64,000 bases of DNA, from positions 62,001 to 126,000 of IMG/VR virus record IMGVR_UViG_3300050120_000152; one strand, written 5' to 3'. Numbering within the stretch: the first letter of the stretch is position 1; every line of letters starts with the position of its first letter. Positions 1-55,411 of the stretch are shown piece by piece. The notes under the pieces were generated by a model. The model ran no database searches, had not been told where the DNA came from, and saw only the letters and a list, made by a program, of their open reading frames with translations. The position numbers were made by a program, and so were the translations under genes.

Positions 1-168
1 CCAGAAAGTGGTACATTTCTCTTCGAAAAGACAAAGGCTGCTTGGGAAGTGTTCCGAGGTCGTGCTGATGCTGTTCGATGGCCGCAAGGGCAATAATAAA
101 GCAGTAAACAACATTGATGTAAGACGGGTTACATAAAACAAATTAATTGTCTAATAGGAGACATAACA

Positions 169-1593
169 ATGAACAGTACATTTAAAACAGAATATTTGAA
201 CAACCTTACCGAGAATATGATTCTCGACGCAGATTCTTACAAGGCAAGCCATTTCGCTTTTCTTGAAGATGGTACTACAGACATTCGTCTATATATCGAG
301 GCCCGCACTGGTGCAAAGCATCAAGCTGTGGTAATGGCTGGTATCCAAGCCTTCAACAAAAAGTACATGATGAAGCCAATCACTCAATTTATGATTGATC
401 AGGCTGATTGGTTTCTTACCACTCATGGTGAGCCGTTTAATCGTGCTGGATGGGAATACGTGCTGAATTATCATGCTGGATATATGCCGGTCGTTATTAA
501 AAGCGCCGAAGAAGGCACCACTATCCCTATTGGTTGCCCGTACATCACCGTAGAGAACACTGACAAGCATCCTTTGGCTGCATGGTGCAGTTCGTACATT
601 GAAACGAAGATCATGCGTACATGGGCACCCATTGCTGTTGCAACACAGTCGAATCTTGTTCGCAAGCTTATCTTGGAATATCTTGAAAAGACTGGTACAC
701 CAGAATTGATTGATTATAAGATGGTTGATTTTGGTAGCCGTGGTGTTAGCTCTAAGGAAACTGCCGAAATTCTTGGTGCTGCTCATCTTACTAGTTTTCG
801 TTCTACAGATAATTTGATGGGCATTGCCCATGCAATGACATATTACAATGCTACTGAAATGTTGGGTGAATCTATCCCTGCCAGCGAGCATTCGGTGACC
901 TGTGCACGCGGCAAGGAAGGTGAACTTCAGTTCTATCTTGACATTGTTGATCGTTTCCTTGGTGAAGGTAAGATGGTATCGGTTGTTGGTGATACTTATG
1001 ACCTTGATGTTATGCTTGATATGCTAGGAACTATGGTTAAGCCATATTTGCTTGCAAAGGGTGGCACATGGGTAGTTCGTCCAGATAGTGGTGATCCTGT
1101 TCTTCAGGTCATGCAAACTATTCGCAAGTTGGAATTATATTTTGGTACAACTACCAATGATAAGGGCTATAAGGTTCTTCATCCTTCTGTTAGAATCATT
1201 CAAGGAGATGGTGTAGATGCTGCGTCGATCCATCGTATCTTGGTGGCTCTTGAGACGGCACATTATAGTGCGGACAATATCACATTTGGTTCGGGTGGTT
1301 GGTTGCTACAGTCGTTGAATCGTGACACCAATCGTACTGCCATGAAAGCATCGTATGTTGAAGTGGGTGATCGTAAGCTTGAAATCCGTAAGGAAGTCAA
1401 AACTGACCCAAGCAAGGCTTCGAAAGCTGGACGTGTTACTACTGTACTTCGCAACGGTAAGAAAATCTGTGTCAAGGAAGATGATATGATTGAAGGCGAT
1501 ATTGATCTTCTTAATGAAACCTATCGTGATGGTGAAGTCTTGAATTTGATTGACTTTGCGACAGTACGAGAGAACGTAAAAGCTGGGAAGTGA
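169..1593 (+). CDS. nadV: Nicotinamide phosphoribosyltransferase (NAMPT/NadV family)
   Basis: DSYKASH, DFGSRG, SIPASEHS, VVGDTYD, VVRPDSGDP, IIQGDGV and FGSGG motifs typical of NAMPT; GGAG RBS upstream. Confidence 0.93.
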   Translation: MNSTFKTEYLNNLTENMILDADSYKASHFAFLEDGTTDIRLYIEARTGAKHQAVVMAGIQAFNKKYMMKPITQFMIDQADWFLTTHGEPFNRAGWEYVLNYHAGYMPVVIKSAEEGTTIPIGCPYITVENTDKHPLAAWCSSYIETKIMRTWAPIAVATQSNLVRKLILEYLEKTGTPELIDYKMVDFGSRGVSSKETAEILGAAHLTSFRSTDNLMGIAHAMTYYNATEMLGESIPASEHSVTCARGKEGELQFYLDIVDRFLGEGKMVSVVGDTYDLDVMLDMLGTMVKPYLLAKGGTWVVRPDSGDPVLQVMQTIRKLELYFGTTTNDKGYKVLHPSVRIIQGDGVDAASIHRILVALETAHYSADNITFGSGGWLLQSLNRDTNRTAMKASYVEVGDRKLEIRKEVKTDPSKASKAGRVTTVLRNGKKICVKEDDMIEGDIDLLNETYRDGEVLNLIDFATVRENVKAGK

Positions 1594-1594
1594 T

Positions 1595-2158
1595 ATGATT
1601 AATGAAATCTTATTAAGGTCATATACCGAAGAAGGTTATGACAAAATACAAGAAATCATGAGTGTCATTATGTCTCACACTGACATGGAAGTTAGTGTGG
1701 TAGATCATTCAAGGGTTTCATATTTAGACTTTGATATTTTAGATGATGAGGTTATTATCAGTATTGACAAGTTCATTTCAGAACAGTTGAACGTGCCATA
1801 TTTCCAAATTTCAAGAGTCTTTAATCTTAATGGTAAACCACTATATCGTCATGTTAGTGGGGATATTGTAAGCACTGGCGCTAATGTTCGTATCATCGAC
1901 ACCGATAAAGTATTTGGCGATAGTATTAAATTAGCATGTGAGATATTTAACACACCTAACTACTCCACGTTATTGACTCTTAACAAAAATCAAGACCTTA
2001 TCGACATTGAAGATTTGCTTTACCCGCAGTCACTATTGATGTATAATGGAAAGACTACCAAATGTAGCTATCTATTAAATGAGAAATTTTTTACCACAAG
2101 GACTTCACTTCCGAAATCATGTTATAAACAATTTTGTAGGATTTTAAATTATGAATAA
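1595..2158 (+). CDS. Divergent phosphoribosyltransferase (type I PRTase)-like protein
   Basis: VRIIDTDKVFGDSI resembles a PRPP-binding loop; starts 1 nt after the NAMPT stop. Confidence 0.4.
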   Translation: MINEILLRSYTEEGYDKIQEIMSVIMSHTDMEVSVVDHSRVSYLDFDILDDEVIISIDKFISEQLNVPYFQISRVFNLNGKPLYRHVSGDIVSTGANVRIIDTDKVFGDSIKLACEIFNTPNYSTLLTLNKNQDLIDIEDLLYPQSLLMYNGKTTKCSYLLNEKFFTTRTSLPKSCYKQFCRILNYE

Positions 2159-2522
2159 CAAATGGCTACCAATATCCAAAGCTCCGAAAGATGGGACTAT
2201 GATTTTAGTCACTGAAACTCCAAATGGTGAACATTGGAATGTTATCCCAGCATGTTGGATGGCATTAACCAGTTATACAGAATCGGACAAAGAAGCTTTT
2301 GAAAATGGTGGGTTTAATCCAGATAATAGCCATAAAGGATATTGGTGGGGCATTTGTGCTACTCGTTATTCACGAGAAGGGCCATTATACACACGATTTA
2401 AGCCCTTAGCTTGCACTCCAATTTGTTGGATGCCTTTTCCTGAAGCTGAATCTGAAAATAAATTGCGTCGTAGACTTTCTCAATTATATAGGAACCCACC
2501 GTATAGGAACACACAGTTATGA
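2151..2522 (+). CDS. DUF551-like phage protein
   Basis: WLPISKAPKDGTMILV N-terminus and PICWMPFP C-terminal motif. Confidence 0.6.
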   Translation: MNNKWLPISKAPKDGTMILVTETPNGEHWNVIPACWMALTSYTESDKEAFENGGFNPDNSHKGYWWGICATRYSREGPLYTRFKPLACTPICWMPFPEAESENKLRRRLSQLYRNPPYRNTQL

Positions 2523-3370
2523 TAACGATTAAAACCCAAAAATTAATTGATGATGTGGCACACTGGTTTGCTGATCGTCATCTTAATCATGCTGTGGTTG
2601 GATATTCAGGTGGTATCGATTCCGCTACCACAGCAGCATTGCTAGATGCTGCAAAAATTAAGACTACTATTGTTCAGGTTGGATTCAAAGGACAAAAATT
2701 TTCCTCTACAACGTTAGCCATGGAAATGTGTGGTGGTCGGAAATACATGCGTTGGGAATATATTGATATGCCTCCTATTAGCATATTTTTTGGTGATGCT
2801 GGTAAGGAGGCTGTGCTTCCTATTATTCGTAATGCTTATTTTTATGGTGTTGCAGCAGAATTACGTGAATCGGGAGAACGTCCTATTATTGTTGGAACAG
2901 CAAATTTTGATGAAGCATCATTTTTAGGATTTTGGGGGAAGGCTTCGGATGCTGCACAAGATTTTTATCCTATCAGCCATCTGCACAAATCTGAAGTTTA
3001 TGCTTTAGCTAAGGAATTGAATGTTCCACAAGAAATCATCAAAGCTGTGCCATCGGGTGATCTTCAATGGTCAGGAGAGCTTAATGATTATAAAATGATC
3101 GGAGCTACCTACGATCAAATTGAAGCATTGGTCAAGTTTGTGGATACACCAAAATGGAAAGGTCTATTTGAAATCATCGATTTCATTAAAAATACTGTCG
3201 ATAACCCCAAATGTTTTGTTAAAAATATTAGCAAGAATGCATTTAAATATGATCTACCCTTTCCCGGCTTCCACATTAATAATCGTCTTGAATTTTTCCG
3301 TAGAGAATATTATAGAAACATTCTGGTAGCTTCAATTTCATTAGAAATAGAGTTTGATTATCCTTATTAA
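2519..3370 (+). CDS. nadE: NH3-dependent NAD+ synthetase
   Basis: PP-loop GYSGGIDS, GTANFDE, GFWGK..D, PISHLHKSEVYALAKEL, PSGDL. Confidence 0.85.
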   Translation: MITIKTQKLIDDVAHWFADRHLNHAVVGYSGGIDSATTAALLDAAKIKTTIVQVGFKGQKFSSTTLAMEMCGGRKYMRWEYIDMPPISIFFGDAGKEAVLPIIRNAYFYGVAAELRESGERPIIVGTANFDEASFLGFWGKASDAAQDFYPISHLHKSEVYALAKELNVPQEIIKAVPSGDLQWSGELNDYKMIGATYDQIEALVKFVDTPKWKGLFEIIDFIKNTVDNPKCFVKNISKNAFKYDLPFPGFHINNRLEFFRREYYRNILVASISLEIEFDYPY

Positions 3371-3702
3371 TGATTCAATTGCTCATAAAAATTAACAATC
3401 TTTTTCATTTCCTCAAGGGTAGCATTTGATTTTAATTTATTAGCTCTATGTGATATGACAATAAGATTATCTAAAGAATATCCTTTAGAAGAGTCAATAC
3501 GATCATAGCTGATAGAATCATCCTCTGCCATGTCTCTGTGGAAATATAATGGAATACCAAGGATGGGGCAGGTAATGGGTATACCAATCTCGTCTATATC
3601 AGACGGAGACAATGTAAAGGCTATATTTCGCTTCTTGGCTGAAGCTTTCAAATGAGTCCAAATATGCTTGAAATCTTTTTGAGTTAGATGTAAAGTATTC
3701 AT
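3367..3702 (-). CDS. Small HNH-type endonuclease, antisense within the NAD cluster
   Basis: CPILG...SYDRIDSSKGYSLDN...ANKLKSN; TATAAATA on the minus strand at 3708-3715. Confidence 0.75.
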   Translation of the reverse strand: MNTLHLTQKDFKHIWTHLKASAKKRNIAFTLSPSDIDEIGIPITCPILGIPLYFHRDMAEDDSISYDRIDSSKGYSLDNLIVISHRANKLKSNATLEEMKKIVNFYEQLNH

Positions 3703-3725
3703 TCAGATATTTATAACAGGAAATT

Positions 3726-4532
3726 ATGATGCACAAATTGATGAACTATTCAGGTAATAAACTCTTAAAGCCAGAGTGGCAATCTGTCGTGCTTAATGAT
3801 GACGATACTTCTCCAACCATCCATAAAATCGAATACGATTTCTATTCGAAGTATCCAATCTATGTGGTAGAAAATGCTCTTTCTGCAAAATCTTGTGATT
3901 TTATTATTGATGACTTTGATGAACAAGAAACCCATCCCGTTGGTATTGATGGATATTGTAATCCTGAATCAAATGTGGGTTCTTATCGTGCCAATGCATG
4001 GGCTGAAGAATTATCAATTACCATTTCCGAAAAATTGCGTGCATTCATGGACGAGAAAGAATTTACCTTTCCATTACTGGGCGATGGTATTGATCCTATC
4101 GTTAATGATAAAGAATTTGCACTTCCATTTTGGCCTCATGATATGCAACCTTTCAGGTTGTTAGGATCAACCCCATTCATGCGTTTTATGAAGTATAAGA
4201 ATGGTGGCATGCATACTCCACACCATGATGCACCTTATAAGAATGAAGAGGAACGGTATATCAGTTTGTTCTCATGGGTGCTGTATCTTAATACACCAGA
4301 TGGGACAGGTGGACATTTTCAATTTGTAAATGATCTTAAACAGAAAGGTAAGCATCCTAGATCATGGGATACTTCCGATTGGACAAATATGTCTAACGAG
4401 GTTACAATGGAAGTTGCTCCGAAGCAGGGAAAATTGTTGATATTTCCTCACTGGCTGTGCCATCAGGTGCAAGAATACATCGGTGAGGGTTATCGTTATA
4501 TCATCAGGGGTGATGTGGCCTACTCTTTTTGA
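3726..4532 (+). CDS. 2OG-Fe(II) dioxygenase (prolyl-4-hydroxylase-like)
   Basis: RFMKY..GG.H.PHHD (HxD), VLYLN, GG.F.F, LLIFPH..CH.V, RYIIR. Confidence 0.85.
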   Translation: MMHKLMNYSGNKLLKPEWQSVVLNDDDTSPTIHKIEYDFYSKYPIYVVENALSAKSCDFIIDDFDEQETHPVGIDGYCNPESNVGSYRANAWAEELSITISEKLRAFMDEKEFTFPLLGDGIDPIVNDKEFALPFWPHDMQPFRLLGSTPFMRFMKYKNGGMHTPHHDAPYKNEEERYISLFSWVLYLNTPDGTGGHFQFVNDLKQKGKHPRSWDTSDWTNMSNEVTMEVAPKQGKLLIFPHWLCHQVQEYIGEGYRYIIRGDVAYSF

Positions 4533-5236
4533 CCAAAAGTGATATGATTATGATTACTGAATCGTGGTATAAAAATCTTGAATCAAAATACGGATATGAT
4601 TTTTGTGTCCGCGCTGGGTATTTTGAAGAAACCAAGCCATGGGGAGAATCATCATATCGTGATATATTCGAATTACCATCTGGTGAATTTGTTATTCAAT
4701 ATTCGGGAGCTTTTTATCCATTACATGATGGGCATTTGGAAGTCATGCAAAAAGCTATGGATAATATTATTGAACGGTGGGATACTTCTGGTGTAGTTGT
4801 TATTCATGTGGATCACCATGAATATAGAACATCTAAAGGTAAATATTCTGAAGAAGAATTTAATAAATCATTAGCTAAACTTGATACACTATTTCCTTAC
4901 AAAGGGTTTACTTATCAAATCATAGCAGAAGATGCTATGCCTAATGGATGTTCACGAAATTTCACTAGGTTATATAGTGAGTTGAGTGACAAGTCTTTAT
5001 ACAATACCGTATATTTTTTGTGCGGTAGTGATCGAGCAAATTATGCTTTTACTTTTCTGGATGATGGTAATTGTTATATTGTCAATAGACCCAATACAAT
5101 TAATCCACTGCTGGCGACCATGGAAGTTTCTGTATTTGAGAATCTTGGTGCATATGCTAACGAGACTATCATATATTTGGATTGCAACAATCCAACGTCA
5201 TCTACAGAAATTAGAAACTTAACTACCGTTCTCTAA
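4529..5236 (+). CDS. HxGH nucleotidyltransferase (NadD/NadM NMN/NaMN adenylyltransferase-like); ATG start probably 4544
   Basis: YSGAFYPLHDGHL, FLCGSDRA, VNRP and C-terminal SSTEIR motifs. Confidence 0.75.
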   Translation: MTKSDMIMITESWYKNLESKYGYDFCVRAGYFEETKPWGESSYRDIFELPSGEFVIQYSGAFYPLHDGHLEVMQKAMDNIIERWDTSGVVVIHVDHHEYRTSKGKYSEEEFNKSLAKLDTLFPYKGFTYQIIAEDAMPNGCSRNFTRLYSELSDKSLYNTVYFLCGSDRANYAFTFLDDGNCYIVNRPNTINPLLATMEVSVFENLGAYANETIIYLDCNNPTSSTEIRNLTTVL

Positions 5237-5527
5237 AATATAATTAAGTACATAGCCAATATTGTTACTTAAATAGAAGTTTATTAACTCAAAATCCTGT
5301 TTGTCGCCATCCGAATCTTGATCGCCATCGGCGACAAAGATTGATTCTATTTTATATTTTTTAGTTTCTTTGTCGATGAACAAATCTACCATGTACTCAA
5401 TCTTATTAGATTCATCCTGAAGCGTGAAGGTTCCATGGAGTACCTTCCCTTCATTTTTGTATAGCGTGCTGCTTAATATTTCAAAGTCATCTTTATATAA
5501 AGATTCAATAATTCGTTCGATTCGCAT
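5219..5527 (-). CDS. Hypothetical acidic protein (start MRIERIIES)
   Basis: Internal ATG of ORF 5219..5605; AATAAATA late-like promoter upstream. Confidence 0.5.
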   Translation of the reverse strand: MRIERIIESLYKDDFEILSSTLYKNEGKVLHGTFTLQDESNKIEYMVDLFIDKETKKYKIESIFVADGDQDSDGDKQDFELINFYLSNNIGYVLNYILENGS

Positions 5528-5639
5528 ATGGAAAACCTGTGTAATGTTATTTATTGATTTGTATACATAGTTACTGCGAACAAAATAATTAAAAGACCCA
5601 TCCACATTCCATAAATAGAAGGTAATTTATGGAATTTAA

Positions 5640-6302
5640 ATGCAATATAGAATTATTTATGATCAACTAATTGATCATGCAAAAGCTACCAATAATGATA
5701 GTGGGCCTTATGAAAAACATCATATTATACCAAAAAGTTTAGGTGGCAGTAATTTAAAAAATAATATAGTAAAATTAACTCCAAGGCAACATTTTGTGGC
5801 CCATCGGCTATTAACAAAATTTTTAATAGGTGCAGATAAACACAAAATGATATTTGCTGTTAAGCGAATGGCAACATCAAATAAGAGGAAATTATATAAT
5901 ATAAATTCTAGAACTTATGAATGGCTGAGAATTCAACATAATATAGCAGCATCTATTGTTATGAAAGGTAGAAAACCATCAGATGATACTATACGTAAAC
6001 AATCTATTGCACAAAGAAAAAGATATGCATTAACACCTACCCATTGGAAAGATAGACAACATGACCCAAATAGTATAGAATTAATTAGGGAAGCTAATAT
6101 AGGTAAAAACAATCACCAATATGGAAAACCAAGAACTACTGAAGAAAGACTAAAAATTAGTTTAACTATGAAAGGTCGTAAAAAATCCAAAGAAACCATA
6201 GAAAAATTTAAAAATAGAAAAGATTCGGAAGAGACTAAGCGTAAAAAAAGTGATGCAGCAAAACTTAGATGGACTAAACATAAAAATGAAATCATGGGAT
6301 AA
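5640..6302 (+). mobile_element. HNH homing endonuclease with NUMOD3 DNA-binding repeats
   Basis: EKHHIIPKSLGGSN...LTPRQHFVAH plus basic repeats (SEETKRKKS, HQYGKPRTTEERLKIS); overlaps the dCMP deaminase start. Confidence 0.88.
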
Positions 6303-6735
6303 AAAATTTATAAATCTTGCTTTACATATAGCAGAATGGTCACACGATCCAAGTACCAAAGTTGGAGCAATTATAGTAGATGATGTGAATAATGTTCGTG
6401 CCATAGGTTATAATGGATTTCCTAGATTGGTCAAAGATACGGTTGAAAGATTGTCAGATCGACCAACCAAATATGCGTTAACTACTCATGCTGAAATAAA
6501 TGCATTGTTATCATGCACACGTTCGGGTGTAGCCACGGACGGTTATACTTTGGTATGTACTCATTATCCATGTTCTACATGTGCAGGAGCAATAATTCAA
6601 GCTGGTATCAAAAATGTAATAACCATTATGCCATCAGATGATTTAATATCAAGATGGGAAACTGAACTTAACATAGCTAAACTCATGTTTAATGAATCAG
6701 GAGTAACCGTGGTTGAGTATATATCAGGATTATGA
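6286..6735 (+). CDS. dCMP deaminase
   Basis: SHDPSTKVGA, GYNGFP, HAEINA, PCSTCA. Confidence 0.92.
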   Translation: MKSWDKKFINLALHIAEWSHDPSTKVGAIIVDDVNNVRAIGYNGFPRLVKDTVERLSDRPTKYALTTHAEINALLSCTRSGVATDGYTLVCTHYPCSTCAGAIIQAGIKNVITIMPSDDLISRWETELNIAKLMFNESGVTVVEYISGL

Positions 6736-6793
6736 ATTGATTGTTGTGTTGAAATACATTATCATAGTGAAATAAATTATAAGGTGGAAGAAT

Positions 6794-7330
6794 ATGGAAA
6801 CTCTTGAATTTAACAAAAATTTTGAATTAAGCAAACATGCAAAGTATTTCATTATGCTTGTTGGTTTGCCGGGTAGCGGAAAAAGCACTTGGTTGCAGGG
6901 AGTTCGCAATACTCAAATTATCATGAATACTGGTGTAAGTTTCGATGTTATCTCCACTGATGATATTATCGAAAAAATTGCTAAAGATCGTGGTCTTACC
7001 TATTCAGATGTTTGGTCTGAATCCATCAAAGGTGCGACCAAGGGAATGCATGAAAATTTTCAAAATGCTATCAGACATAATCATAATGTCATTTGGGATC
7101 AAACCAATTGCACTTCTAAGAAGCGTAAATCGGTAATAGTTCAAGTGCCTAATGATTATTACAAAGTTGCTGTAGTGTTTAATACTCCATTGGATGAAAT
7201 TGAACGTCGCCTTAAGGCTCGTGCTTTGGAAACTGGAAAAAACATCCCCAAGTCAGTATTACTAAATATGTATGATACCTTTGAACAACCGACACACGGA
7301 GAAGGTTTCGATTTCATCAACCAAGAATAA
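6794..7330 (+). CDS. P-loop kinase (AAA_33 / polynucleotide-kinase-like)
   Basis: MLVGLPGSGKST, ISTDD, IWDQTN...R, RLKAR. Confidence 0.8.
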   Translation: METLEFNKNFELSKHAKYFIMLVGLPGSGKSTWLQGVRNTQIIMNTGVSFDVISTDDIIEKIAKDRGLTYSDVWSESIKGATKGMHENFQNAIRHNHNVIWDQTNCTSKKRKSVIVQVPNDYYKVAVVFNTPLDEIERRLKARALETGKNIPKSVLLNMYDTFEQPTHGEGFDFINQE

Positions 7331-7341
7331 AGGAATTAATT

Positions 7342-7968
7342 ATGACTTTTCAAAATCATTATGATGGTTCTCCCAAGATATTACAGTTAGATTCTGGTGG
7401 TAATCCCATGGATTGGCTGTCTATAGAAGATTATGCAACATTAAAAGCGAAAGAAAGAGTTCTATGGACTACGGGTACATATGCCTATACAATGCGTGGT
7501 GGTACTAATGCAAAGACTGGTATGCGTTCTGAATTAATGTTGGATACCATTGTTGCAATCAAGCATGAAGGTAAAGTTAAAACTGCTAAACGTCATGCTA
7601 ACGGGTTCAATCCTACCTTGTCCAACAAAATGTTGTTTGAACGTGACAAGTACCTTTGCGCTTACTGCGGTCATGTGTATCCGAAGCATAAGTTGACTCG
7701 TGACCATATTATTCCTGTTAGCAAAAATGGGTCAGATGATTGGCTTAACGTGATTACAGCTTGCGGCCCCTGTAACCGATGGAAAGATAATAGAACCCCG
7801 GAAGAAGCAGGTTTGTTATTATTGATGGTTCCATATAAACCAAGTTTTCATGAGCATTTAATTTTAAAAAATAGAAATATACTCTATGATCAATTAGAAT
7901 TCTTGTTAAAGGGAGTTAGCCCTGATTCTCCAGTATATAAAGAAAGTATATTACGTTTAGCAAAATGA
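7342..7968 (+). CDS. HNH endonuclease (McrA-like)
   Basis: RDKYLCAYCG, LTRDHIIPVSKNG, NVITACGPCNRWK. Confidence 0.88.
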   Translation: MTFQNHYDGSPKILQLDSGGNPMDWLSIEDYATLKAKERVLWTTGTYAYTMRGGTNAKTGMRSELMLDTIVAIKHEGKVKTAKRHANGFNPTLSNKMLFERDKYLCAYCGHVYPKHKLTRDHIIPVSKNGSDDWLNVITACGPCNRWKDNRTPEEAGLLLLMVPYKPSFHEHLILKNRNILYDQLEFLLKGVSPDSPVYKESILRLAK

Positions 7969-7971
7969 AAA

Positions 7972-8397
7972 TTATGCCGTTTGTGTGGTTATATAATAAC
8001 CACACAAAGGTTTTTTATCTTTAATTCTTCTACTTATATAAGTATGAAAAGTATTAAAAAATTTAGCAGCATCCGTTTTGGATGAAAAATATATAATATC
8101 ACCATTTTCAGTAGTGCATACTATAGAAGTCTTTGCTCTCACAATTTTTGTATAGGGTGTTAATTTATCATATCCTTCTATATTACCGTTAATATCTAAT
8201 CTACACCAATAATAACCTTGATAATATGATGATTTATTAACGACTGTCATTATCCGTTTATTAAAAATTGAATTCATATAGATTTCTTTGACAGAATTCC
8301 ATATCTTGATAATCTCAAGGGTTTTATTACCATCTACTTTGACTTGGTTTTGGAGCATATAATGTTGCAAATATATCTTTATTGATACCAACATCAA
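7972..8397 (-). pseudogene. NUMOD1-like DNA-binding remnant of a homing endonuclease
   Basis: IIYFSSKTDAAKFF...ISRRIK helix-turn-helix repeat; no catalytic domain visible. Confidence 0.4.
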
Positions 8398-9361
8398 TAA
8401 TAACTAAATTACCCTGATAGACGCCCCAATTTGCTAAACGATTAAAATCTCCAATGGGCATGTCATAATTACCAACCATATCACCAAAGTTACTGGCGAA
8501 TTCATTTTCAGGATCAATTTTTGCATGATTACCACCAGTGTAATCTTTACCACCATGGCAATTAACAGCAAAAGCACATAAATCTGCTAAAGTTCCACCA
8601 CACGCTTTGATAAAATCAGAATCTTTAGCTTTAGTTGCAAATTCTGTATGAATCCATGATGGTTGTGGTGATTCTTCATCATAATCAATGATAGGAATTA
8701 TTAAATTTAAACTTTTTAAATAGTAATCATTCATTTTTTCAGCTTCGTGTTCATTTTGAACTAAGCCTTTCTTATTTTTTGCTATTTTTAATACTGTTTG
8801 CCGACCTTCATAGGGTAATACGAAAGCTACTCTGGAACTACCTACACCAACTTGACGTGCACGTTCTTTAGCATAACGAATTTGTTTAGCAAATGGCGTA
8901 TTATTATTGAAAGTTCCTTTGTCCCAATCAGCCGGTAAAGGCATTTCGTTTATCAAATAACGCTTAAAAGATAATTTTTCATTCATAGGTTTAGGTCTTG
9001 GTTTAGGATTTCTTATCATAGCTTCAGATACAGCAAAGTCTTTATTTCTACCACTATTCATGACAAACCCAAAAGATTTATAAAATTGAATTAAACGATT
9101 GCGGGATGTTGTCCCAAAATTCTTGTCAGTTGATCCCGGCGAGAGTATGATTCGACAATTGTTATCATCAGCTAATTCAGTCAAAGCATTCATGGCACGA
9201 CTACCGATTCCAGAATGTTGATTATCTTTGGATACAGCAATCATCATTAGATTTATATCATTGCCTTTCAGGTAAACTTCAAAATGGCTTAATCCAAGCT
9301 CATTCTTAGTTTTTTCGGCCCATGATTGTAATTCTGAATTTGTTAACATTGAATAAACCAT
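8327..9361 (-). CDS. GNAT acetyltransferase fused to a protein-kinase-like domain
   Basis: N-terminal QHSGIGSRAM...LIQFYKSFGF (GNAT); C-terminal GVGSSR, VLKIA, E, D...NWG, IIDVG (kinase-like). Confidence 0.65.
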   Translation of the reverse strand: MVYSMLTNSELQSWAEKTKNELGLSHFEVYLKGNDINLMMIAVSKDNQHSGIGSRAMNALTELADDNNCRIILSPGSTDKNFGTTSRNRLIQFYKSFGFVMNSGRNKDFAVSEAMIRNPKPRPKPMNEKLSFKRYLINEMPLPADWDKGTFNNNTPFAKQIRYAKERARQVGVGSSRVAFVLPYEGRQTVLKIAKNKKGLVQNEHEAEKMNDYYLKSLNLIIPIIDYDEESPQPSWIHTEFATKAKDSDFIKACGGTLADLCAFAVNCHGGKDYTGGNHAKIDPENEFASNFGDMVGNYDMPIGDFNRLANWGVYQGNLVIIDVGINKDIFATLYAPKPSQSRW

Positions 9362-9443
9362 ATATTAATGATATTTATCGTTAATAGTCTTTCCATGAAC
9401 ACAAAAACATGTTATCATCTTGTTCATAAATGGATAGTAACAA

Positions 9444-10013
9444 ATGAATTTACAAGAATACCAAAATTATGCATTAAGAACGGAGTCAATTATTAGTGAA
9501 GTTGTAGTAGAAGATAAGCATGAGTTAAATTATGTGTTATCAGCATTTATTACTGTAGGAGAAATGCTTGATTGCTATAAGAAAGCTGCATACTATCATA
9601 ATCCCAAAAAATATAATGAACAATTTCAAGAATTAACCCAAAAGTTAGTATTTTTTGCTGAAGCGTTGTCTAGGCATAAATCATTAGAACATACCCCAGC
9701 AAAACTTAATATTGATCCTCGTACATTCCACGGAATCGTTGGAATCGCCAGCGAAAGCGTGGAATTAGTAATGGCATTAGAAAAAGCCTTGAATGGTCAT
9801 GAAATTGATCCCGTTAATGTACAGGAAGAACTATCGGATATCGCATGGTATAATGCAATTTTAAATGACACGCTGAACCTTTCATGGGAAGAAGGTCTTG
9901 AACGTAATATTGCCAAGCTTAAGGCTCGATATCCTGAAAAATATTCAGATAAAAATGCTGAAATTCGTGATTTACATGTTGAACGAAAGATTCTTGAAGG
10001 TAATGGTGAATGA
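9444..10013 (+). CDS. MazG-like NTP pyrophosphohydrolase
   Basis: GIASESVEL, EELSDIAWY, NIAKLKARYPEKY. Confidence 0.85.
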   Translation: MNLQEYQNYALRTESIISEVVVEDKHELNYVLSAFITVGEMLDCYKKAAYYHNPKKYNEQFQELTQKLVFFAEALSRHKSLEHTPAKLNIDPRTFHGIVGIASESVELVMALEKALNGHEIDPVNVQEELSDIAWYNAILNDTLNLSWEEGLERNIAKLKARYPEKYSDKNAEIRDLHVERKILEGNGE

Positions 10014-15534: not shown

Positions 15535-16722
15535 ATGAAAATTTTTAAGGTAGGTGGAAGCATTCGTGATTTCTTTCTAAAAAAGACTCCACACGATCAT
15601 GATTATGTAGTCGTGGGTGCAACACCTTCTGAAATGGAATCTATGGGCTATAAACAAGTCGGTAAGGACTTCCCGGTCTACTTGCATCCTGATACTGGCG
15701 AAGAGTACGCGTTGGCTCGTACAGAGCGTAAAACAGGCTTGAAGCATACTGATTTTGATACAGTGTTTGATACTTCGGTAACCATTGAAACTGACCTTGC
15801 CAGACGTGATTTAACGATAAATTCTATTGCGCAAGATTTGGAAACTGGTGAATACATCGATCCATTCAATGGCATTCAAGATATTGAAAATAAAGTGCTG
15901 CGTCATACCACGGAAGCCTTCAAGGAAGACCCATTGCGTGTATTGCGTTTGGGACGTTTCTGTGCAAAATTTCCAGATTTTGAAGTGGCCGATGATACAG
16001 ATACAATGGTAAATCATATGATTGCCCGTGGTGAATTGGAGCATTTGTCCAAGGATCGTGTGTGGGAAGAAACTAAGAAAGCAGTGTTGTCAAAAGAACC
16101 GTTTAAATATTTTCTATTCTTACATCATGTGGAAGCATTACAATATGCTGTCATCGGTGGAAATATGATTACGGCTGAATTTGCTGAAGCGTTTAAGCGG
16201 ATTACCGAGTCTACTGAAAAAATGCCAGATGATGAAAAACTGTTGTGTCGTATGGCAGTCGTTTATTACCATTTGGGTACTTTATATAAATTGCAGTATC
16301 AATCTAACAAAGCTGCTACAGCAGAATTGAATACATGGAAAATTCCAACAGAAATTGCAGAATTTATTCAATTGGTGAATACTAAAGCATATGCGCTGAC
16401 GCATACTATTTTTAATTATAAGAATTTAGTTGAAATTATGGATGATATTGGAGTACGTAATAGAATTCAGAAGAATGACAGTTTCTTACAGAATTTGGGT
16501 TTAGTGTGTAACGCAATTTATCCAACAAAAGATATGTCTGCTACATATGACCCTGAATGGAATATTAAACATTTTATTGAACATGTACCATGCTATTTCG
16601 ATACCAAGGAAGCATTGGCCGAATGGATGGATGTAAATAAGCATGCTACAGGTAAAGAAATCAATGACAGATTGAAATTGATTAGAATACAAAATATGTT
16701 TTTAAATAGAGCTACACTATGA
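15535..16722 (+). CDS. cca: tRNA nucleotidyltransferase (CCA-adding enzyme, class II)
   Basis: VGGSIRD, DHDYVVVGA, VGKDFPV, EYALARTERK, DLARRDLTINSIA, EDPLRVLR. Confidence 0.95.
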   Translation: MKIFKVGGSIRDFFLKKTPHDHDYVVVGATPSEMESMGYKQVGKDFPVYLHPDTGEEYALARTERKTGLKHTDFDTVFDTSVTIETDLARRDLTINSIAQDLETGEYIDPFNGIQDIENKVLRHTTEAFKEDPLRVLRLGRFCAKFPDFEVADDTDTMVNHMIARGELEHLSKDRVWEETKKAVLSKEPFKYFLFLHHVEALQYAVIGGNMITAEFAEAFKRITESTEKMPDDEKLLCRMAVVYYHLGTLYKLQYQSNKAATAELNTWKIPTEIAEFIQLVNTKAYALTHTIFNYKNLVEIMDDIGVRNRIQKNDSFLQNLGLVCNAIYPTKDMSATYDPEWNIKHFIEHVPCYFDTKEALAEWMDVNKHATGKEINDRLKLIRIQNMFLNRATL

Positions 16723-17330
16723 AGAAAGTAAAAGCCGTAGTATTTGATGCATATGGTACCATTGTAAAAATTGGGAAAAAGACTAAACCACTAAATCCAT
16801 ATAAAATGATTTCCGGTAATATTAAAAATCATGGTTACAATCCTGTAACCATGGAGTTATCATTGAAAGATTATGATGAAATAATGCAAGGTAGTTCAGC
16901 CTATATAGATAATTATATTGAAGCTGAGATTGCTCTTCAAAAAGAAATTAAGTCTATCAAACCGTTCCCAGAAGCTATGGATGTAATGAAAATATTAAAG
17001 AAACATGGAATTAAAATTGCAGTTTGTTCTAATTTAGCACAACCATATGCACAGCCGATCATTGACATTTTTGGTGATGTAGTAGATGAATATGTTTGGA
17101 GTTTCAACACATTTGCTAAACCTGATATTCGAATTTATCAAATTGTAGAAGAGCGACTTGGATTACTAGGTAACGATATTCATATGATCGGAGATAGTTA
17201 CATCAATGATTATATGACGCCCAAAGAATTTATGGGTTGGTCGGCAACATTTTTGGATAGAACTGGCGGTGATGCTGGGCATCCATCGGTGTCACGCCTT
17301 AATTCTATTTTTCTGGATATTCAATTATGA
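16719..17330 (+). CDS. HAD-family hydrolase
   Basis: VFDAYGT, CSN, KPD, MIGDS..ND. Confidence 0.85.
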   Translation: MKKVKAVVFDAYGTIVKIGKKTKPLNPYKMISGNIKNHGYNPVTMELSLKDYDEIMQGSSAYIDNYIEAEIALQKEIKSIKPFPEAMDVMKILKKHGIKIAVCSNLAQPYAQPIIDIFGDVVDEYVWSFNTFAKPDIRIYQIVEERLGLLGNDIHMIGDSYINDYMTPKEFMGWSATFLDRTGGDAGHPSVSRLNSIFLDIQL

Positions 17331-18349
17331 CAACTATATTAATCATAACCGACGCATTTTTGCCGCAGGTAAACGGGGTTGTAACTACTTTCATTAATAC
17401 TATAAAAGTATTAGAACAGGAAGGTTTTGTAGTAGATGTTATATCACCATCATTATTTAAAACGATTCCCTTAATTGGTTATAGAGAAATCAGAATTGCC
17501 ATCAATCCATGGATAGTCGGCAAATTGATAGAAACTATAAACCCCGATCATATCCATATTGCTACAGAAGGCCCAATAGGTTTATTTGCTGGAATTTATT
17601 GTCGAAAAAAAGGTTACCAATTTTCTACATCGTATCATACAAAAATGCCAGAGTATATCAAGGAAAGATATAAAGTTATACCAGTAAACTTTAGTTACAC
17701 TTATATGAAATTTATTCATCGCGGATCATCTAATATTTTAGTTACTACTGATTCTATGAAAACCGAACTGCTTAAACAGGGGTTTAAAAATAAAATAACT
17801 GTATGGGGTCGAGGGGTTGATACTACAATTTTTAATGATACAGGTAGAATACCACATAAAAAACTGTCACTACTATATGTAGGACGAATATCTATCGAAA
17901 AAAATATTAAGGCATATCTTGATATGCCTGTAGATGCAGTAAAATATGTAGTAGGTAATGGCCCTCTGTTGGAGACTTATAAGAAAAATTATAAAAATGA
18001 TCCTAATATTATATTTGTTGGTGAAAAGAAGGGCAAAGAATTACAATATTATTATGTAAATGCAGATGTATTTGTATTTCCTTCAAAAACTGACACACTT
18101 GGAATTGTATTGCTAGAATCCATAGCATGCGGTACGCCTGTCATAGCTTATCCAGTTACGGGGCCAATTGACTGTATTACAGATGGTTTGACTGGAATAT
18201 TAAGCAATAATCTTGGTAATATTGAGATGCAGAAAGCAATATTGTTAGATAGACATAAAATATTTGAAATAGGTCAAACTCTTACATGGGAAAAGTGTAC
18301 GGACATTTTCAGAAACTCTTTGGTGAGAGCATTGAACTATCGTAAATAA
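17327..18349 (+). CDS. GT4 glycosyltransferase, Agt-like (diacylglycerol glycosyltransferase)
   Basis: TDAFLPQVNGVV, HIATEGPIG, SYHTKMPEY, WGRGVD, VGRISIEKN, FPSKTDTLGIVLLE. Confidence 0.85.
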   Translation: MTTILIITDAFLPQVNGVVTTFINTIKVLEQEGFVVDVISPSLFKTIPLIGYREIRIAINPWIVGKLIETINPDHIHIATEGPIGLFAGIYCRKKGYQFSTSYHTKMPEYIKERYKVIPVNFSYTYMKFIHRGSSNILVTTDSMKTELLKQGFKNKITVWGRGVDTTIFNDTGRIPHKKLSLLYVGRISIEKNIKAYLDMPVDAVKYVVGNGPLLETYKKNYKNDPNIIFVGEKKGKELQYYYVNADVFVFPSKTDTLGIVLLESIACGTPVIAYPVTGPIDCITDGLTGILSNNLGNIEMQKAILLDRHKIFEIGQTLTWEKCTDIFRNSLVRALNYRK

Positions 18350-23125: not shown

Positions 23126-25027
23126 ATGACCATTCATTTCTACACGGAATTTTTTATGTCTGACATTGATGCCATCGTTGCCCAACTTGAAGTGTACGAT
23201 ATCGCCTATGATGATGGTGATTCACTCGTACCTGATGCACAATACGATGCTATGAAACGTGATGCATTCAAGCGATTCCCAACTCACCCATATTTTATGA
23301 CCGTAGGCGCTACCGTTCGTGGTGGTAAGGTTAAGCTTCCTTATACCATGGGGTCACTTGACCAAAAATACGAGGGTGAAATCGAAGATTGGGTTAAAAA
23401 GTATAGTCTGTATAATGAAGAAATTTGTATTAGTCATAAACTTGATGGTGCAAGTGGCATGGAACGTTATAATGGTGGAACATTTCAGATATCTTATAGT
23501 CGTGGTAATGGTGTGCTTGGTGCAGATAGTAGCCGCCATGTAAAGAATTTGCCAAGTAATCCCCAAACAATTTCTAAATTAGGTCATCTAACTGTTCGCG
23601 GTGAATTAATTGTTCGCAATGATACGTTCGAAAATCGTTATGCGGATGATTATAAGACCGCTCGTGCTATGGCATCTGGTTGCATGAATGCATCTAATAC
23701 GTCACAGAATAAATTGAACGATATTGATTTTATTATGTATAGTGTTGTTGACTGTGATCCAGAATTCGAAACGGTTTCACAATCAGCCTCTTTGGATATG
23801 CTTGAATTATTAGGATTTAAAGTTGTTCCTTATATTATTGTTAGGGGATCGGAATTGAATGATGATTTCCTTACTAAAACGTTGGCTAAAGCACGCGCAG
23901 ATTCGCCATATGAATTAGATGGTATCGTGTTGACTATCAACAAAAAGTCTGCACAAAAGAATTTATCGAATTCTTCCAGTTTGAATCCTGAACATTCTGT
24001 AAAATATAAAGTTTTGGATGCTGCTGCATTGATTGAAACGACAGTAGTTAAAGTCCATTATGAAATTAGTAAGAATGGATATCAGAAGCCTCGCGTGGAG
24101 ATTAACCCTGTTCAGCTATTCGGCACAACGGTAACGTTCGCCACGGGCTTTAATGGCCGTTACATTGTGGATAATAACATTGGATCGGGAACCAAAATCA
24201 AAATTACCAAAAGTGGATCAGTTATTCCATATATTGTAGAAATTGTTAAATCTACCGTCGCCGATGTTCCGTCTGGCGATTGGGATTGGAATGATAACAA
24301 GGTAGAAATGGTAGTTCGTGATCCACAGAATCATCCTGAAGTCATTTTTAAACAAGTATTGGACTTCTTTAATACACTGGAAGTTGATCTACTAAAGGAA
24401 GCATCTATCGAAAAGGTTATTAGCTATCTGAAGCTTAATAATTCTTCCTATGAAACCATTCTGTTCACTATGCTTAATTTGCTAGAAATGGAATGGGAGA
24501 AGATCATTGGCTCTAATGGTGCAAAAATCTTTGCCAGCTTGGAACGTCGATTGTCGTCCTTGACTCTTGCTAAATATTTGGGATCACTTAAATATTTTGG
24601 TACGGGGTTTGGAGTTCGCAAGGCTAAACTATTGTTGAAAAATCTTACGGATGAAAATGATGTATGGAAATTATCTGTCAATAGGATTGTGGATTTTGAA
24701 GGTTTCGATGTAAAGACTGCAACAAAGTTTATTGATGGCTTATATGATGCTAAGGCATTTGCTGACAAAATGAATTTGAAGTTTGTGCAGGAAAAGAAAA
24801 CTAATGAATTAGAACATTTGAATGTTGTATTCACTGGTTTTCGTGATAAAGAATTTCAAGAAAAACTTGAGAAATCAGGTGCCAAAGTTGGATCATCAGT
24901 GTCTAAAAAGACAACTCATGTGCTAACAGCAGAACCAAATTCTAGTTCAGGTAAGGCTGTCAAGGCTCGTGAGTTAGGTATTGATACTCTTTCGCTAGAT
25001 GAATTTAAAGAAAAATTTAATTTATGA
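23126..25027 (+). CDS. ligA: NAD+-dependent DNA ligase (likely start 23156)
   Basis: DAQYD, KLDG, SRGNG, RGE, DGIV, KSGSVIP, C-terminal BRCT (VFTG...SVSKKT). Confidence 0.93.
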   Translation: MTIHFYTEFFMSDIDAIVAQLEVYDIAYDDGDSLVPDAQYDAMKRDAFKRFPTHPYFMTVGATVRGGKVKLPYTMGSLDQKYEGEIEDWVKKYSLYNEEICISHKLDGASGMERYNGGTFQISYSRGNGVLGADSSRHVKNLPSNPQTISKLGHLTVRGELIVRNDTFENRYADDYKTARAMASGCMNASNTSQNKLNDIDFIMYSVVDCDPEFETVSQSASLDMLELLGFKVVPYIIVRGSELNDDFLTKTLAKARADSPYELDGIVLTINKKSAQKNLSNSSSLNPEHSVKYKVLDAAALIETTVVKVHYEISKNGYQKPRVEINPVQLFGTTVTFATGFNGRYIVDNNIGSGTKIKITKSGSVIPYIVEIVKSTVADVPSGDWDWNDNKVEMVVRDPQNHPEVIFKQVLDFFNTLEVDLLKEASIEKVISYLKLNNSSYETILFTMLNLLEMEWEKIIGSNGAKIFASLERRLSSLTLAKYLGSLKYFGTGFGVRKAKLLLKNLTDENDVWKLSVNRIVDFEGFDVKTATKFIDGLYDAKAFADKMNLKFVQEKKTNELEHLNVVFTGFRDKEFQEKLEKSGAKVGSSVSKKTTHVLTAEPNSSSGKAVKARELGIDTLSLDEFKEKFNL

Positions 25028-27757: not shown

Positions 27758-28150
27758 TCCAAAGTAATTTGGATTATGATTGTAAAGATATCGTAAGGTA
27801 TCTGAGATTGTGAGTAATAAAGGGCCGCGACACGAGGGTTCGACTCCCTCCATCTCCACCACATATGTTCTTTACTGTTGCAACAGTAACGCTAGACGCC
27901 TATCAACTCCCTTCGAAAGGAGCCATGTGTAGGATGAGACAAGCCCAATGATGGCGCGGAAGAACATAGCTGATGGGGATGCAATGGCTTCGACCGGGGT
28001 TAGAATAGACAAACAGACAATCCGTTTAGAATGGTACGTTATACCTTAAAAAACTATAAATGCTTCTAACGATGCGATTTATTCAATGGAATACAGCTTA
28101 GCTGCTTGAAATTGATGGGGTTTAATCCACCTTATTACCCAACAAGATTA
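27758..28150 (+). ncRNA. ssrA: Circularly permuted (two-piece) tmRNA; outer ends approximate
   Basis: Acceptor piece ends GAGGGTTCGACTCCCTC-CATCTCC-ACCA (27861); coding piece starts GGGGATG (27975) giving G3:U70; tag ORF 28062-28109 encodes ASNDAIYSMEYSLAA*. Confidence 0.92.
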
Positions 28151-28151
28151 C

Positions 28152-28175
28152 AAAAAGGAGCTTCGGCTCCTTTTT
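28152..28175 (+). terminator. Intrinsic terminator of the tmRNA
   Basis: aaaaaggagc-ttcg-gctccttttt. Confidence 0.9.
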
Positions 28176-28255
28176 GTTTTATAGTGCATTGCAAAATATT
28201 CAAATGATTTTCATCCACCATAAATACTTAGACATTTATTTTGGAGGATACTAAA

Positions 28256-49591: not shown

Positions 49592-49669
49592 GGGCTATTG
49601 AAGGGAATTGGTCTACCTACCATCCTTAGAAGTTGGTGTTTCTCGGTTCGAATCCGAGGTAGCCCACCA
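49592..49669 (+). tRNA. tRNA-Leu(TAG), short variable loop
   Basis: GGGCTAT/GTAGCCC acceptor, loop CTTAGAA, TTCGAAT T-loop, encoded CCA. Confidence 0.85.
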
Positions 49670-49675
49670 AATTAT

Positions 49676-49758
49676 GCCGATGTGGGGGAACGTATACCCA
49701 GCACGCTAAGGACGTGCCGCCGCAAGGCATGCAGGTTCAAGTCCTGTCATCGGTACCA
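49676..49758 (+). tRNA. tRNA-Leu(AAG)
   Basis: Stem GCACG/CGTGC with loop CTAAGGA; long variable arm GCC-GCAA-GGC; A73-CCA. Confidence 0.85.
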
Positions 49759-49766
49759 AATTTAAA

Positions 49767-49822
49767 TCTTAGGGACTGATGATTGTAAGACCCAAGTGAA
49801 ACTAGCGTTCTAGTAACAATCA
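49767..49822 (+). ncRNA. Pseudoknotted, ribozyme-like spacer between tRNAs
   Basis: cttaggg/cccaag crosses tgattgt/acaatca; hairpin actag/ctagt. Confidence 0.35.
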
Positions 49823-49826
49823 ATAT

Positions 49827-49906
49827 ACCGCTGTTGGGCAATGGAGGCCCGCCAGAATACGAATCTGGTATAACACATGTTGGTTCGAATCCAATCAGCG
49901 GTGCCA
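49827..49906 (+). tRNA. tRNA-Arg(ACG)
   Basis: ACCGCTG/CAGCGGT acceptor; CCAGA-ATACGAA-TCTGG; CCA. Confidence 0.85.
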
Positions 49907-55403: not shown

Positions 55404-55411
55404 AATTATAT

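Follow-up and report, generated by a model that had tools for sequence, protein, structure and literature searches.

Several pathways presumed to keep NAD+ available to phages have been described. Among the closest to the locus studied here is the KVP40-type NARP2 pathway, comprising NAMPT and NMNAT-NUDIX (Osterman et al., bioRxiv 10.1101/2024.02.11.579819). The Preiss-Handler pathway (PncB, NadD and NadE) has been reported from annotation as a pncB-nadD-nadE gene cluster in some jumbo phages, in which redundant NAD+ routes have also been reported (PMC11662467). In Francisella, NadE acts as an NMN synthetase, followed by NadM (solved structure 3fiu). NARP1 (Adps and Namat) and NARP3 (PnuC and a NadR-like protein; PMC13464706) are likewise carried by phages and share the same presumed purpose, but they use different enzymes, and here we found no PRPP-synthetase-like Adps of normal size, no PnuC and no NadR.

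We analyzed a 64,000-nucleotide stretch (hereafter, the window; positions 62,001 to 126,000 of IMG/VR record IMGVR_UViG_3300050120_000152) from a peat jumbo phage, in which an initial annotation had proposed an extended NAD+-rebuilding cluster of six co-oriented, mostly overlapping genes interrupted by an antisense HNH gene. The ORF listing confirmed this observation (Table 1). The junctions are a 1-nt gap, an 8-nt overlap and a 4-nt overlap, followed by the HNH insert and then a 4-nt overlap if ORF7 starts at TTG 4529. However, the JGI gene call places this start at ATG 4544, and homologues fit ATG 4544 or 4550 better, which would leave an 11-17 nt gap. A 30-kb contig from an independent assembler spans positions 1-5700 with no differences.

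Table 1. Features in and near the locus; positions are those of the window unless stated otherwise
Feature	Coordinates	Strand	Assignment
NMNAT-NUDIX (373 aa)	L006 (the phage's own contig) 4223-5344; ends about 114 bp before position 1 of the window		Canonical partner of NAMPT in NARP2
NAMPT	169-1593	+	NadV-type nicotinamide phosphoribosyltransferase
ORF2	1595-2158	+	Cassette member; predicted divergent type I PRTase-like fold
ORF3	2151-2522	+	Small gene, no family; not a conserved cassette member
NadE-like	2519-3370	+	Cassette member; PP-loop ATP-dependent amidase, short NH3-dependent type without a glutaminase domain
HNH	3367-3702	-	Probable homing endonuclease; not part of the pathway
2OG oxygenase	3726-4532	+	Cassette member; prolyl-4-hydroxylase-type 2OG/Fe(II) oxygenase
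ORF7	4529-5236	+	Cassette member; HxGH-class nucleotidyltransferase, predicted NadD/NMNAT-like fold; start at TTG 4529, ATG 4544 or ATG 4550
DNA ligase	23126-25027		NAD-dependent DNA ligase
Xanthomonas phage X1 cassette	105048-107709 of OQ427096		ORF7::ORF2 fusion, 2OG oxygenase, NAD synthase

The domain assignments rest on evidence of unequal strength. NAMPT matched Pfam NAMPT_N and NAPRTase, NCBIfam PRK09198 (484 bits against a cut-off of 405) and phrog_448 (E 2.7e-132). The NadE-like protein, which carries the SGGIDS PP-loop, matched Pfam NAD_synthase (85.9 bits) and TIGR00552 (79.5 bits against a cut-off of 63.65) but did not reach the full-length equivalog models; its best solved relatives are 2e18, 3p52, 1xng and 3fiu. 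The oxygenase exceeded the cut-offs of PF13640 (41.2 bits) and PF13759 (34.5 bits), and in the family alignment H166, D168, H242, H246, R257 and R261, which include the catalytic triad and basic residues, are invariant. Its nearest solved relative is a B. anthracis P4H (E 0.007), and the clade of 56 proteins to which it belongs tracks the cassette described below.

The initial annotation took ORF7 for the NMNAT that works with NAMPT. ORF7 scored below the Pfam and NCBIfam cut-offs, including those of the equivalog-level models, and its assignment is supported by motifs and by the predicted fold. The motifs GAFYPLHDGH and SSTEIR are present, and H66, G68, H69, S224, S225 and R229 are invariant in 22 sequences; ORF7 also has a conserved 50-residue N-terminal extension. 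In a Foldseek search with the AF2 model (pLDDT 88.6), the top 20 PDB hits were all NadD/NMNAT (E 5e-6 to 1e-3), PPAT and FAD synthetase scored 100-1000 times weaker, and AFDB Swiss-Prot gave the same picture. ORF7 thus groups with NaMN/NMN adenylyltransferases and not with sugar or glycerol cytidylyltransferases, a grouping that had been named beforehand as a result that would count against the proposal. However, a canonical NMNAT-NUDIX gene lies next to NAMPT on the phage's own contig, just upstream of the window, as it does in relatives, whereas ORF7 belongs to a different family with no NUDIX domain. A single six-gene pathway in which ORF7 acts with NAMPT, and NadE and the oxygenase are add-ons, is consistent with the adjacency and common orientation of the genes and with the fold of ORF7, but it is largely refuted by the synteny and we regard it as very unlikely.

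We next compared the gene content of related loci. ORF2, the NadE-like gene, the oxygenase gene and ORF7 co-occur in 14 distinct loci, and ORF7 always travels with the other three. Six of these loci lie next to NARP2, whereas eight have no NAMPT or NMNAT-NUDIX within 8-10 kb; one of the eight is on a contig of a Burkholderia stagnalis assembly with 66% GC and bacterial flanking genes. In five loci of one set (group B), most or all neighboring genes overlap by 4-38 nt, and co-divergence was significant for 5 of 6 protein pairs. The members are also tied together by gene fusions: ORF2 is fused to NadE in some lineages (P0072, P0073, P0075, P0078 and P0079), and in L018 the oxygenase lies directly upstream of such a fusion. 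In the cultured Xanthomonas phage X1, ORF2 is fused to the ORF7-type enzyme in a protein annotated only as hypothetical, the oxygenase and NadE follow directly, and NMNAT-NUDIX and NAMPT lie 2-5 kb downstream. The X1 genes show about 25-27% identity and a different order. The cassette sits beside NARP2 in two deeply diverged arrangements, namely X1 and the six loci of group A.

These results indicate that the region holds two adjacent modules: an ordinary NARP2, which would convert nicotinamide and PRPP to NMN and then to NAD+, and a self-contained four-gene cassette that is inherited as a unit. We found no paper describing this cassette. The interpretation in the initial annotation is partly supported. 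All five activities it named are plausibly present, the cluster does go beyond NARP2, the genes are syntenic elsewhere, and the phage does encode an NAD-dependent ligase; however, it merged two modules and took ORF7 for the NARP2 NMNAT. The function it proposed, rescue of deamidated pyridine nucleotides or synthesis of a modified dinucleotide, is compatible with the data but remains conjectural.

For ORF2, no sequence hit was obtained in Pfam, PHROG, NCBIfam or PDB, and the PRTase-like assignment is supported only by the structure model (AF2 pLDDT 97.3) and a motif, IIDTDxVxGx(T/S), that sits on a strand-loop-helix like a PRPP loop. Nearly all of the top 29 rows of a VIA-wide structural comparison were PRTase-fold proteins, and Foldseek hits were PRTase-dominated but weak. 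However, the match is only moderate, as Z values of 5-7 can reflect a common arrangement, and the PRPP-like motif is atypical (D-x-D...G-x-T/S). S73, R74, D102, D104, D140 and Y159 are invariant, and the acidic and Ser/Arg residues are so across 52 sequences, as expected of an active site. PRTase-fold regulators such as PyrR and PurR exist and appear among the structural hits, which raises the possibility that ORF2 is a non-catalytic nucleotide-binding subunit, that the oxygenase, whose nearest relatives are protein prolyl-4-hydroxylases, modifies a partner enzyme or a host protein, and that only NadD-like and NadE-like chemistry (NaMN to NaAD to NAD+) takes place. We consider this very unlikely in view of the invariant residues and of the fusions of ORF2 to both enzymes, which suggest substrate hand-over.

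The best explanation, which we hold with moderate confidence, is that the cassette is a non-orthologous version of the Preiss-Handler branch, probably building NAD+ or an NAD-like dinucleotide by an undescribed route. In this view, ORF2 would join a carboxylated pyridine-type base, nicotinate being the simplest candidate, to PRPP; ORF7 would adenylylate the resulting mononucleotide to a dinucleotide; and the NadE-like enzyme would amidate the carboxylate with ATP and NH3, either at the mononucleotide stage, as in Francisella, or at the dinucleotide stage. The ORF2::NadE fusions fit the former, and the NadE-like protein scores similarly against 3fiu, although substrate preference cannot be read from these data and the Francisella route has neither an oxygenase nor a type I PRTase. 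Such a pathway would give the phage a second way to make NAD+ that does not depend on nicotinamide. The oxygenase would carry out an obligatory step that may prepare or tailor the base or nucleotide, or hydroxylate a partner protein. Whereas the gene content, conservation, fusions, modeled folds and intact catalytic motifs were established by our analysis, the substrates, the order of the steps and the product are inferred. The logic of a phosphoribosyltransferase, a NadD-like adenylyltransferase and a NadE-like amidase is shared with the Preiss-Handler pathway; however, PncB is absent, known nicotinate, nicotinamide and quinolinate PRTases are type II enzymes, and a 2OG oxygenase has no place in any known NAD+ route, so that a plain Preiss-Handler reading leaves one obligatory gene unexplained.

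The last point could instead indicate that the cassette makes an NAD analogue, in which the oxygenase creates or tailors the base or ribose and ORF2, ORF7 and NadE convert it into a carboxamide-bearing adenine dinucleotide that either resists defense NADases or inhibits or decoys them. The invariant and catalytically intact oxygenase, the type I rather than type II PRTase-like ORF2 and the unique N-terminal extension of ORF7 are in line with this possibility. Moreover, the phages of group A and X1 already have NARP2 for NAD+ itself, and the cassette is also found in a bacterium that presumably already has NadD and NadE, which hints at a specialized product. However, this reading lacks chemical evidence, NadE and ORF7 most closely resemble the ordinary NAD+ enzymes, and redundant NAD+ routes have precedent in jumbo phages; we therefore regard it as a tentative and less likely alternative.

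It is also conceivable, although unlikely, that the cassette is unrelated to pyridine nucleotides and makes another carboxamide-bearing ribonucleotide, for example a modified purine or pyrimidine nucleotide for nucleic-acid hypermodification or a small-molecule effector, with the oxygenase oxidizing a substituent to a carboxylate that NadE would then amidate. The best structural matches of ORF2 are 6-oxopurine and orotate PRTases, some 2OG oxygenases (thymine-7-hydroxylase and TET enzymes) oxidize methyl groups stepwise to carboxylates, and in group A the cassette is followed by dCMP deaminase, a kinase and a 5'-nucleotidase. On the other hand, NadE and ORF7 match NAD+ enzymes specifically, the cassette is linked to NARP2 in two deeply diverged arrangements, and an adenylyltransferase has no obvious role in base hypermodification.

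The two remaining genes within the locus are not conserved members of the cassette. ORF3 had no family match and was found in only one other lineage (loci L002, L003 and L014), at 85% identity against about 40-56% for its neighbors. The HNH gene matched phrog_3322 (E 5e-30) and related endonuclease families; it occupies the same site, between NadE and the oxygenase, in all six group A loci at 68-86% identity, compared with 45-62% for the flanking genes, and is absent from the group B cassettes.

We examined the ORFs of the window on both strands and searched their products against family models. Six ORFs on the + strand and one antisense ORF were identified at positions 169-5236, and the observation made in the initial annotation was thus confirmed; the coordinates of these and other features are listed in the table below. 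The contig belongs to a 340-kb phage from a peat metagenome, and an independent assembly contains an identical 30-kb contig across the region. A near-identity DNA search of 50,697 phage records returned nothing; no phage in the INPHARED collection is close at the DNA level. The NadV-type NAMPT was confirmed by Pfam NAMPT_N and NAPRTase and by NCBIfam PRK09198 (484 bits against a cut-off of 405), the 2OG/Fe(II) oxygenase by PF13640 (41.2 bits, cut-off 27) and PF13759, and the antisense gene as an HNH endonuclease. The NAD-dependent DNA ligase, to which the initial annotation had attributed a direct need for NAD+, is real. ORF2 and ORF3 matched no family. A PADLOC search found no defence-system membership, and promoter and terminator scans gave results at chance level.

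Features of the window and of related loci (L006, the phage's own contig, where window position = L006 position minus 5457; L002 and L004, loci of related sequences; L026, a Burkholderia stagnalis contig)
Sequence	Coordinates	Strand	Feature
Window	169-1593	+	NAMPT
Window	1595-2158	+	ORF2, PRTase-like
Window	2151-2522	+	ORF3, 123 aa
Window	2519-3370	+	NadE-like
Window	3367-3702	-	HNH endonuclease
Window	3726-4532	+	2OG/Fe(II) oxygenase
Window	4529-5236	+	ORF7, NadD/NMNAT-like; start TTG 4529, ATG 4544 or ATG 4550
Window	5640-6302	+	HNH/NUMOD3 homing endonuclease gene
Window	6250-6735		dCMP deaminase ORF, GTG start
Window	7342-7968	+	HNH-type endonuclease gene
Window	15535-16722 and 17327-18349		PolyA_pol head-domain protein and GT4 glycosyltransferase
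Window	23126-25027		NAD-dependent DNA ligase
Window	27769-28200; 49592-49906; 55396-55492; 57731-57817		tmRNA-like gene and five tRNAs
L006	1721-2978		NADAR-domain gene and HAD_SAK_2 gene
L006	3642-4217		HNH-type endonuclease gene
L006	4223-5344		NMNAT-NUDIX gene, 373 aa
L026 (JBRIKN010000031.1)	6744-9986		Four-gene cassette
L004	6257-6517		NadE-like N-terminal fragment
L002	16344-16565		SIR2-domain ORF, 73 aa

We next asked which gene serves as the NMNAT partner of NAMPT. Relatives found through ORF7 homologues carry a CTP_transf_like + NUDIX gene next to NAMPT, and the first 96 bases of the window encode the end of a small ORF which, in the related locus L001, lies between the NMNAT-NUDIX gene and NAMPT. 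The phage's own contig contains a KVP40-type NMNAT (NadM-NUDIX), which in NARP2 is usually adjacent to NAMPT; it is a 373-aa CTP_transf_like + NUDIX gene that ends about 114 bp before the window starts and about 280 bp upstream of NAMPT. NARP2, as defined by Osterman et al., is therefore NMNAT-NUDIX plus NAMPT, and ORF7, which the initial annotation had taken as the NMNAT of this pathway, is a second transferase. A NADAR-domain gene and a HAD_SAK_2 gene lie further upstream; NADAR is also found upstream in L008, L009 and L014, and HAD_SAK_2 in L009, so that the neighbourhood looks like an NAD+/ADP-ribose conflict island. A related phage (L002) carries a SIR2-domain ORF next to the 5'-nucleotidase gene.

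To determine which genes travel together, we mapped the proteins of the window onto all retrieved loci by tblastn. ORF2, the NadE-like gene, the oxygenase and ORF7 co-occur in every locus, 14 distinct ones in all. Six loci (group A: the window/L006, L001, L002/3/14, L008/13, L009 and L015) have the order [NMNAT-NUDIX ... NAMPT]-ORF2-(ORF3)-NadE-[HNH]-oxygenase-ORF7, and NARP2 is nearby wherever the upstream flank is present (L015 is a 4.4-kb contig that starts inside ORF2). The remaining eight (group B: L004/5, L010, L011, L012, L021, L026, L027 and L028) have the order NadE-oxygenase-ORF7-ORF2, with no NARP2 in flanks of 8-10 kb. In five group B loci, most or all neighbouring genes overlap by 4-38 nt, whereas in L011 the cassette genes are spread out, and the genes between them belong to no recognisable families, so that no further pathway members were found there. 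Pairwise identities of the four proteins co-vary across 13 loci; the Mantel test was significant for 5 of 6 pairs (P ≤ 0.009), although ORF2 against the oxygenase was not significant. The oxygenase clade contains 56 proteins and tracks the cassette, and all three distant members whose context we examined sit inside it. In L004, a short NadE-like N-terminal fragment (33% identity to NadE residues 9-108) lies just upstream of, and overlapping, the full NadE gene, and may be a duplication remnant.

One group B locus, L026, is a Burkholderia stagnalis assembly contig, in which the cassette has 66% GC and is flanked by AraC, KorA, Tle3, BenE and ABC-transporter genes. The cassette lies there in a bacterial accessory region, beside a Tle3-family lipase effector gene and the KorA gene, and a 96-aa ORF overlaps the NadE start. 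However, a scan of 185,579 species genomes with the ORF7 family found only one further hit, a 40.8-kb contig in a metagenome bin; the family is therefore mainly phage-borne.

ORF3 and the HNH gene are not members of this cassette. ORF3 is 85% identical to a gene at the same position in L002/L014 and is absent from every other cassette locus, and it looks like a recently exchanged small gene. The antisense HNH gene is a group A insert, located at the same site between NadE and the oxygenase in all six group A loci, where it is 68-86% identical, compared with 45-62% for the flanking genes, as expected of a homing endonuclease. A comparison with public contigs revealed no joints or variants, and hence no evidence for HNH presence/absence polymorphism. 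In total, four HNH-type endonuclease genes lie within about 13 kb, and a paralogous HNH domain (42% identity) is found just upstream of NMNAT-NUDIX. The dCMP deaminase ORF overlaps the end of the HNH/NUMOD3 gene by about 50 nt, so its true start is probably further downstream.

We further analyzed gene fusions involving ORF2. A word-index search for ORF2 homologues returned two relatives only, whereas an exhaustive profile search with the ORF2 family found about 40 stand-alone representatives and several longer proteins. Five of the longer proteins (designated P0072, P0073, P0075, P0078 and P0079) have the ORF2-like domain fused N-terminally to a NAD_synthase domain, and in locus L018 an oxygenase lies 3 nt upstream of such a fusion. 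The 52-sequence ORF2 alignment was too diverse to be used as a query for loci. In the cultured Xanthomonas phage X1, a 371-aa 'hypothetical protein' consists of an N-terminal ORF7-like half (hhalign 98%; HMM E 3e-16) and a C-terminal ORF2-like half (hhalign 89.6%, E 1.9e-6 over 125 columns with the 52-sequence profile); the X1 sequence was left out of structure prediction. This gene is followed directly by a 2OG oxygenase and an NAD synthase, with NMNAT-NUDIX and NAMPT 2-5 kb downstream. ORF2 is thus linked by fusion to both enzymes, and the cassette sits near NARP2 in two arrangements that share only about 25% identity. Two alternative roles for ORF2 were rejected: that of a glutaminase-type ammonia donor for NadE, because there is no invariant Cys or His, and that of an Adps-like kinase partner of NAMPT, because ORF2 travels with NadE and ORF7 rather than with NAMPT.

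The start of ORF7 may be TTG 4529, which overlaps the oxygenase stop, although ATG 4544 or 4550 fit the homologues better. ORF7 remained below the sequence-model cut-offs for NaMN/NMN adenylyltransferases (PF01467 CTP_transf_like, 17.6 against 21; TIGR00482, 16.9 against 112), and it represents a separate family within the superfamily. It carries GAFYPLHDGH and SSTEIR, which correspond to the HxGH and SxxxxR nucleotide-binding motifs, and H66-D-G-H69 and S224-S225...R229 are invariant in 22 sequences. The AF2 model from these 22 sequences has pLDDT 88.6, and its 20 best Foldseek PDB hits are all NaMN/NMN adenylyltransferases, including B. anthracis NadD and human NMNAT1 and NMNAT3 (E 5e-6 to 1e-3, TM 0.47-0.63), followed by PPAT and FAD synthetase, which score 100-1000 times weaker; AFDB Swiss-Prot gave the same picture. 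Grouping of this protein with sugar or glycerol cytidylyltransferases, which the initial annotation had set as a refuting condition, was therefore not observed. Sequence searches of ORF2 and ORF7 against solved structures gave only noise, or E of about 0.007 to NadR.

For ORF2, the AF2 model from 52 sequences has pLDDT 97.3. Nearly all of the top 29 rows of a VIA-wide structural comparison are PRTase-fold proteins (HGXPRT, XGPRT, OPRT, PRPP synthetase, APRT, PyrR, UPRT and PurR), although only at Z 5-7, and the 6-oxopurine enzymes align over nearly the whole model. Foldseek hits are PRTase-dominated but weak (E 0.01-0.2), and the stored ESM Atlas model was poor (pLDDT 0.37) and its hits were uninformative. 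The invariant D102-x-D104...G108 block lies on a strand-loop-helix, as a PRPP loop does. However, the motif is D-T-D-x-V-x-G-x-T/S rather than the canonical PRPP-binding [DE]-D-x-x-x-T-G-x-T, and there is no hit to the Pfam Pribosyltran model; one distant member (P0076) has the near-canonical VDDDMDSGGN. The label 'PRTase-like' used in the initial annotation thus rests on these fold comparisons and not on family membership.

The NadE-like protein has the PP-loop SGGIDS and the GTxNxxE block, and exceeds the cut-offs of PF02540 (85.9 bits, cut-off 21) and TIGR00552 (79.5 bits, cut-off 63.65). It does not reach the full-length equivalog models (PRK13980, 88 against 255; PRK00768, 56 against 250) and is a divergent member. 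Its best solved relatives are the short NH3-dependent enzymes 2e18, 3p52, 1xng and 3fiu, which include both NaAD-type enzymes and the Francisella enzyme. In the oxygenase, the HxD...H iron triad and basic 2OG-binding positions are conserved, with H166, D168, H242, H246, R257 and R261 invariant. Its nearest solved relative is B. anthracis prolyl-4-hydroxylase, at E 0.007 only, and its ESM Atlas neighbours are PF13640 proteins, including Ofd1-like and 'iron-regulated' hydroxylases.

The three recognisable predicted activities line up as the logic of the Preiss-Handler branch, namely PRTase-like, then NadD-like adenylyltransferase, then NadE-like amidase, and both fusions fit hand-over of a mononucleotide made by ORF2. 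However, no PncB-type (type II) nicotinate phosphoribosyltransferase is present, since no second NAPRTase-family gene lies in or beside the cassette in any locus. From the order of these activities and the fusions, we favour a self-contained route from a carboxylated base plus PRPP to an amidated adenine dinucleotide, most simply from nicotinate to NAD+. Such a route would work when nicotinamide is not available, for instance after deamidation by host PncA, although this last point is inference. The gene content, co-occurrence and fusions were observed directly, whereas the substrates and product of the cassette, amidation of NaAD or NaMN by the NadE-like enzyme, and NAD+ synthesis from nicotinamide by the NARP2 pair with rescue from NAD+-depleting defence are inferred. 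The interpretation in the initial annotation was partly supported: the cluster is larger than NARP2 and plausibly NAD-related, but it consists of two modules and the NMNAT assignment was wrong.

The oxygenase is the unexplained part, as it is always present and looks active from its sequence, yet no known NAD+ route needs it. This, together with the predicted type I PRTase-like fold of ORF2 and the presence of the cassette in a bacterium that presumably has its own NadD and NadE, keeps open the reading that the product is an NAD analogue. In this view, which we consider unlikely but not excluded, the cassette would be a complete four-enzyme pathway, mostly carried by phages, to a non-canonical, oxygenase-tailored pyridine (or pyridine-like) adenine dinucleotide, which would serve the phage either as an NADase-resistant cofactor or as an inhibitor or decoy of SIR2/TIR-type NAD+-depleting defences, a counter-defence principle distinct from NARP1-3. 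If so, this would be new biochemistry and possibly a natural NADase inhibitor. Another carboxamide ribonucleotide as the product, or a protein-hydroxylase role for the oxygenase, are less likely readings.

Rebuilding NAD+ is a recently recognised way for phages to escape Thoeris, DSR, SIR2-HerA and similar defences, and three pathways are known: NARP1 (Adps + Namat), NARP2 (NAMPT + NMNAT) and NARP3 (PnuC + a NadR-like enzyme). A survey of NAD+/ADPr systems in viruses lists only NadV, NadM and NadR as phage NAD+ synthesis enzymes (PMC9503650), whereas a jumbo-phage study reports pncB-nadD-nadE clusters from annotation (PMC11662467), and the X1 paper lists nadD, nadE and an oxoglutarate oxygenase among auxiliary genes, without linking them (PMC13384950). 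A full-text search for a phage 2OG oxygenase together with NAD synthase and NAMPT found nothing. Phage NadE and NadD genes are therefore known, but the conserved four-gene cassette, its PRTase-like and oxygenase members and its fusions appear undescribed in the literature we could search. The cassette would add a fourth route that does not depend on nicotinamide, and three of its parts are unexpected: a type I PRTase-like enzyme where NAD+ biology uses type II enzymes, a new family of NadD-like transferases, and a 2OG oxygenase with no role in any known NAD+ pathway. Its novelty would be greater still if the product turns out to be an NAD analogue. Because it occurs in a cultured phage and in a Burkholderia genome, it can be tested directly.

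Elsewhere in the window, ARAGORN called a tmRNA-like gene (tag ASNDAIYSMEYSLAA) and five tRNAs (Leu x2, Arg x2 and Met). The PolyA_pol head-domain protein is of the CCA-adding or poly(A) polymerase type, and the GT4 glycosyltransferase also hits a 'GT4 in conflict systems' model.
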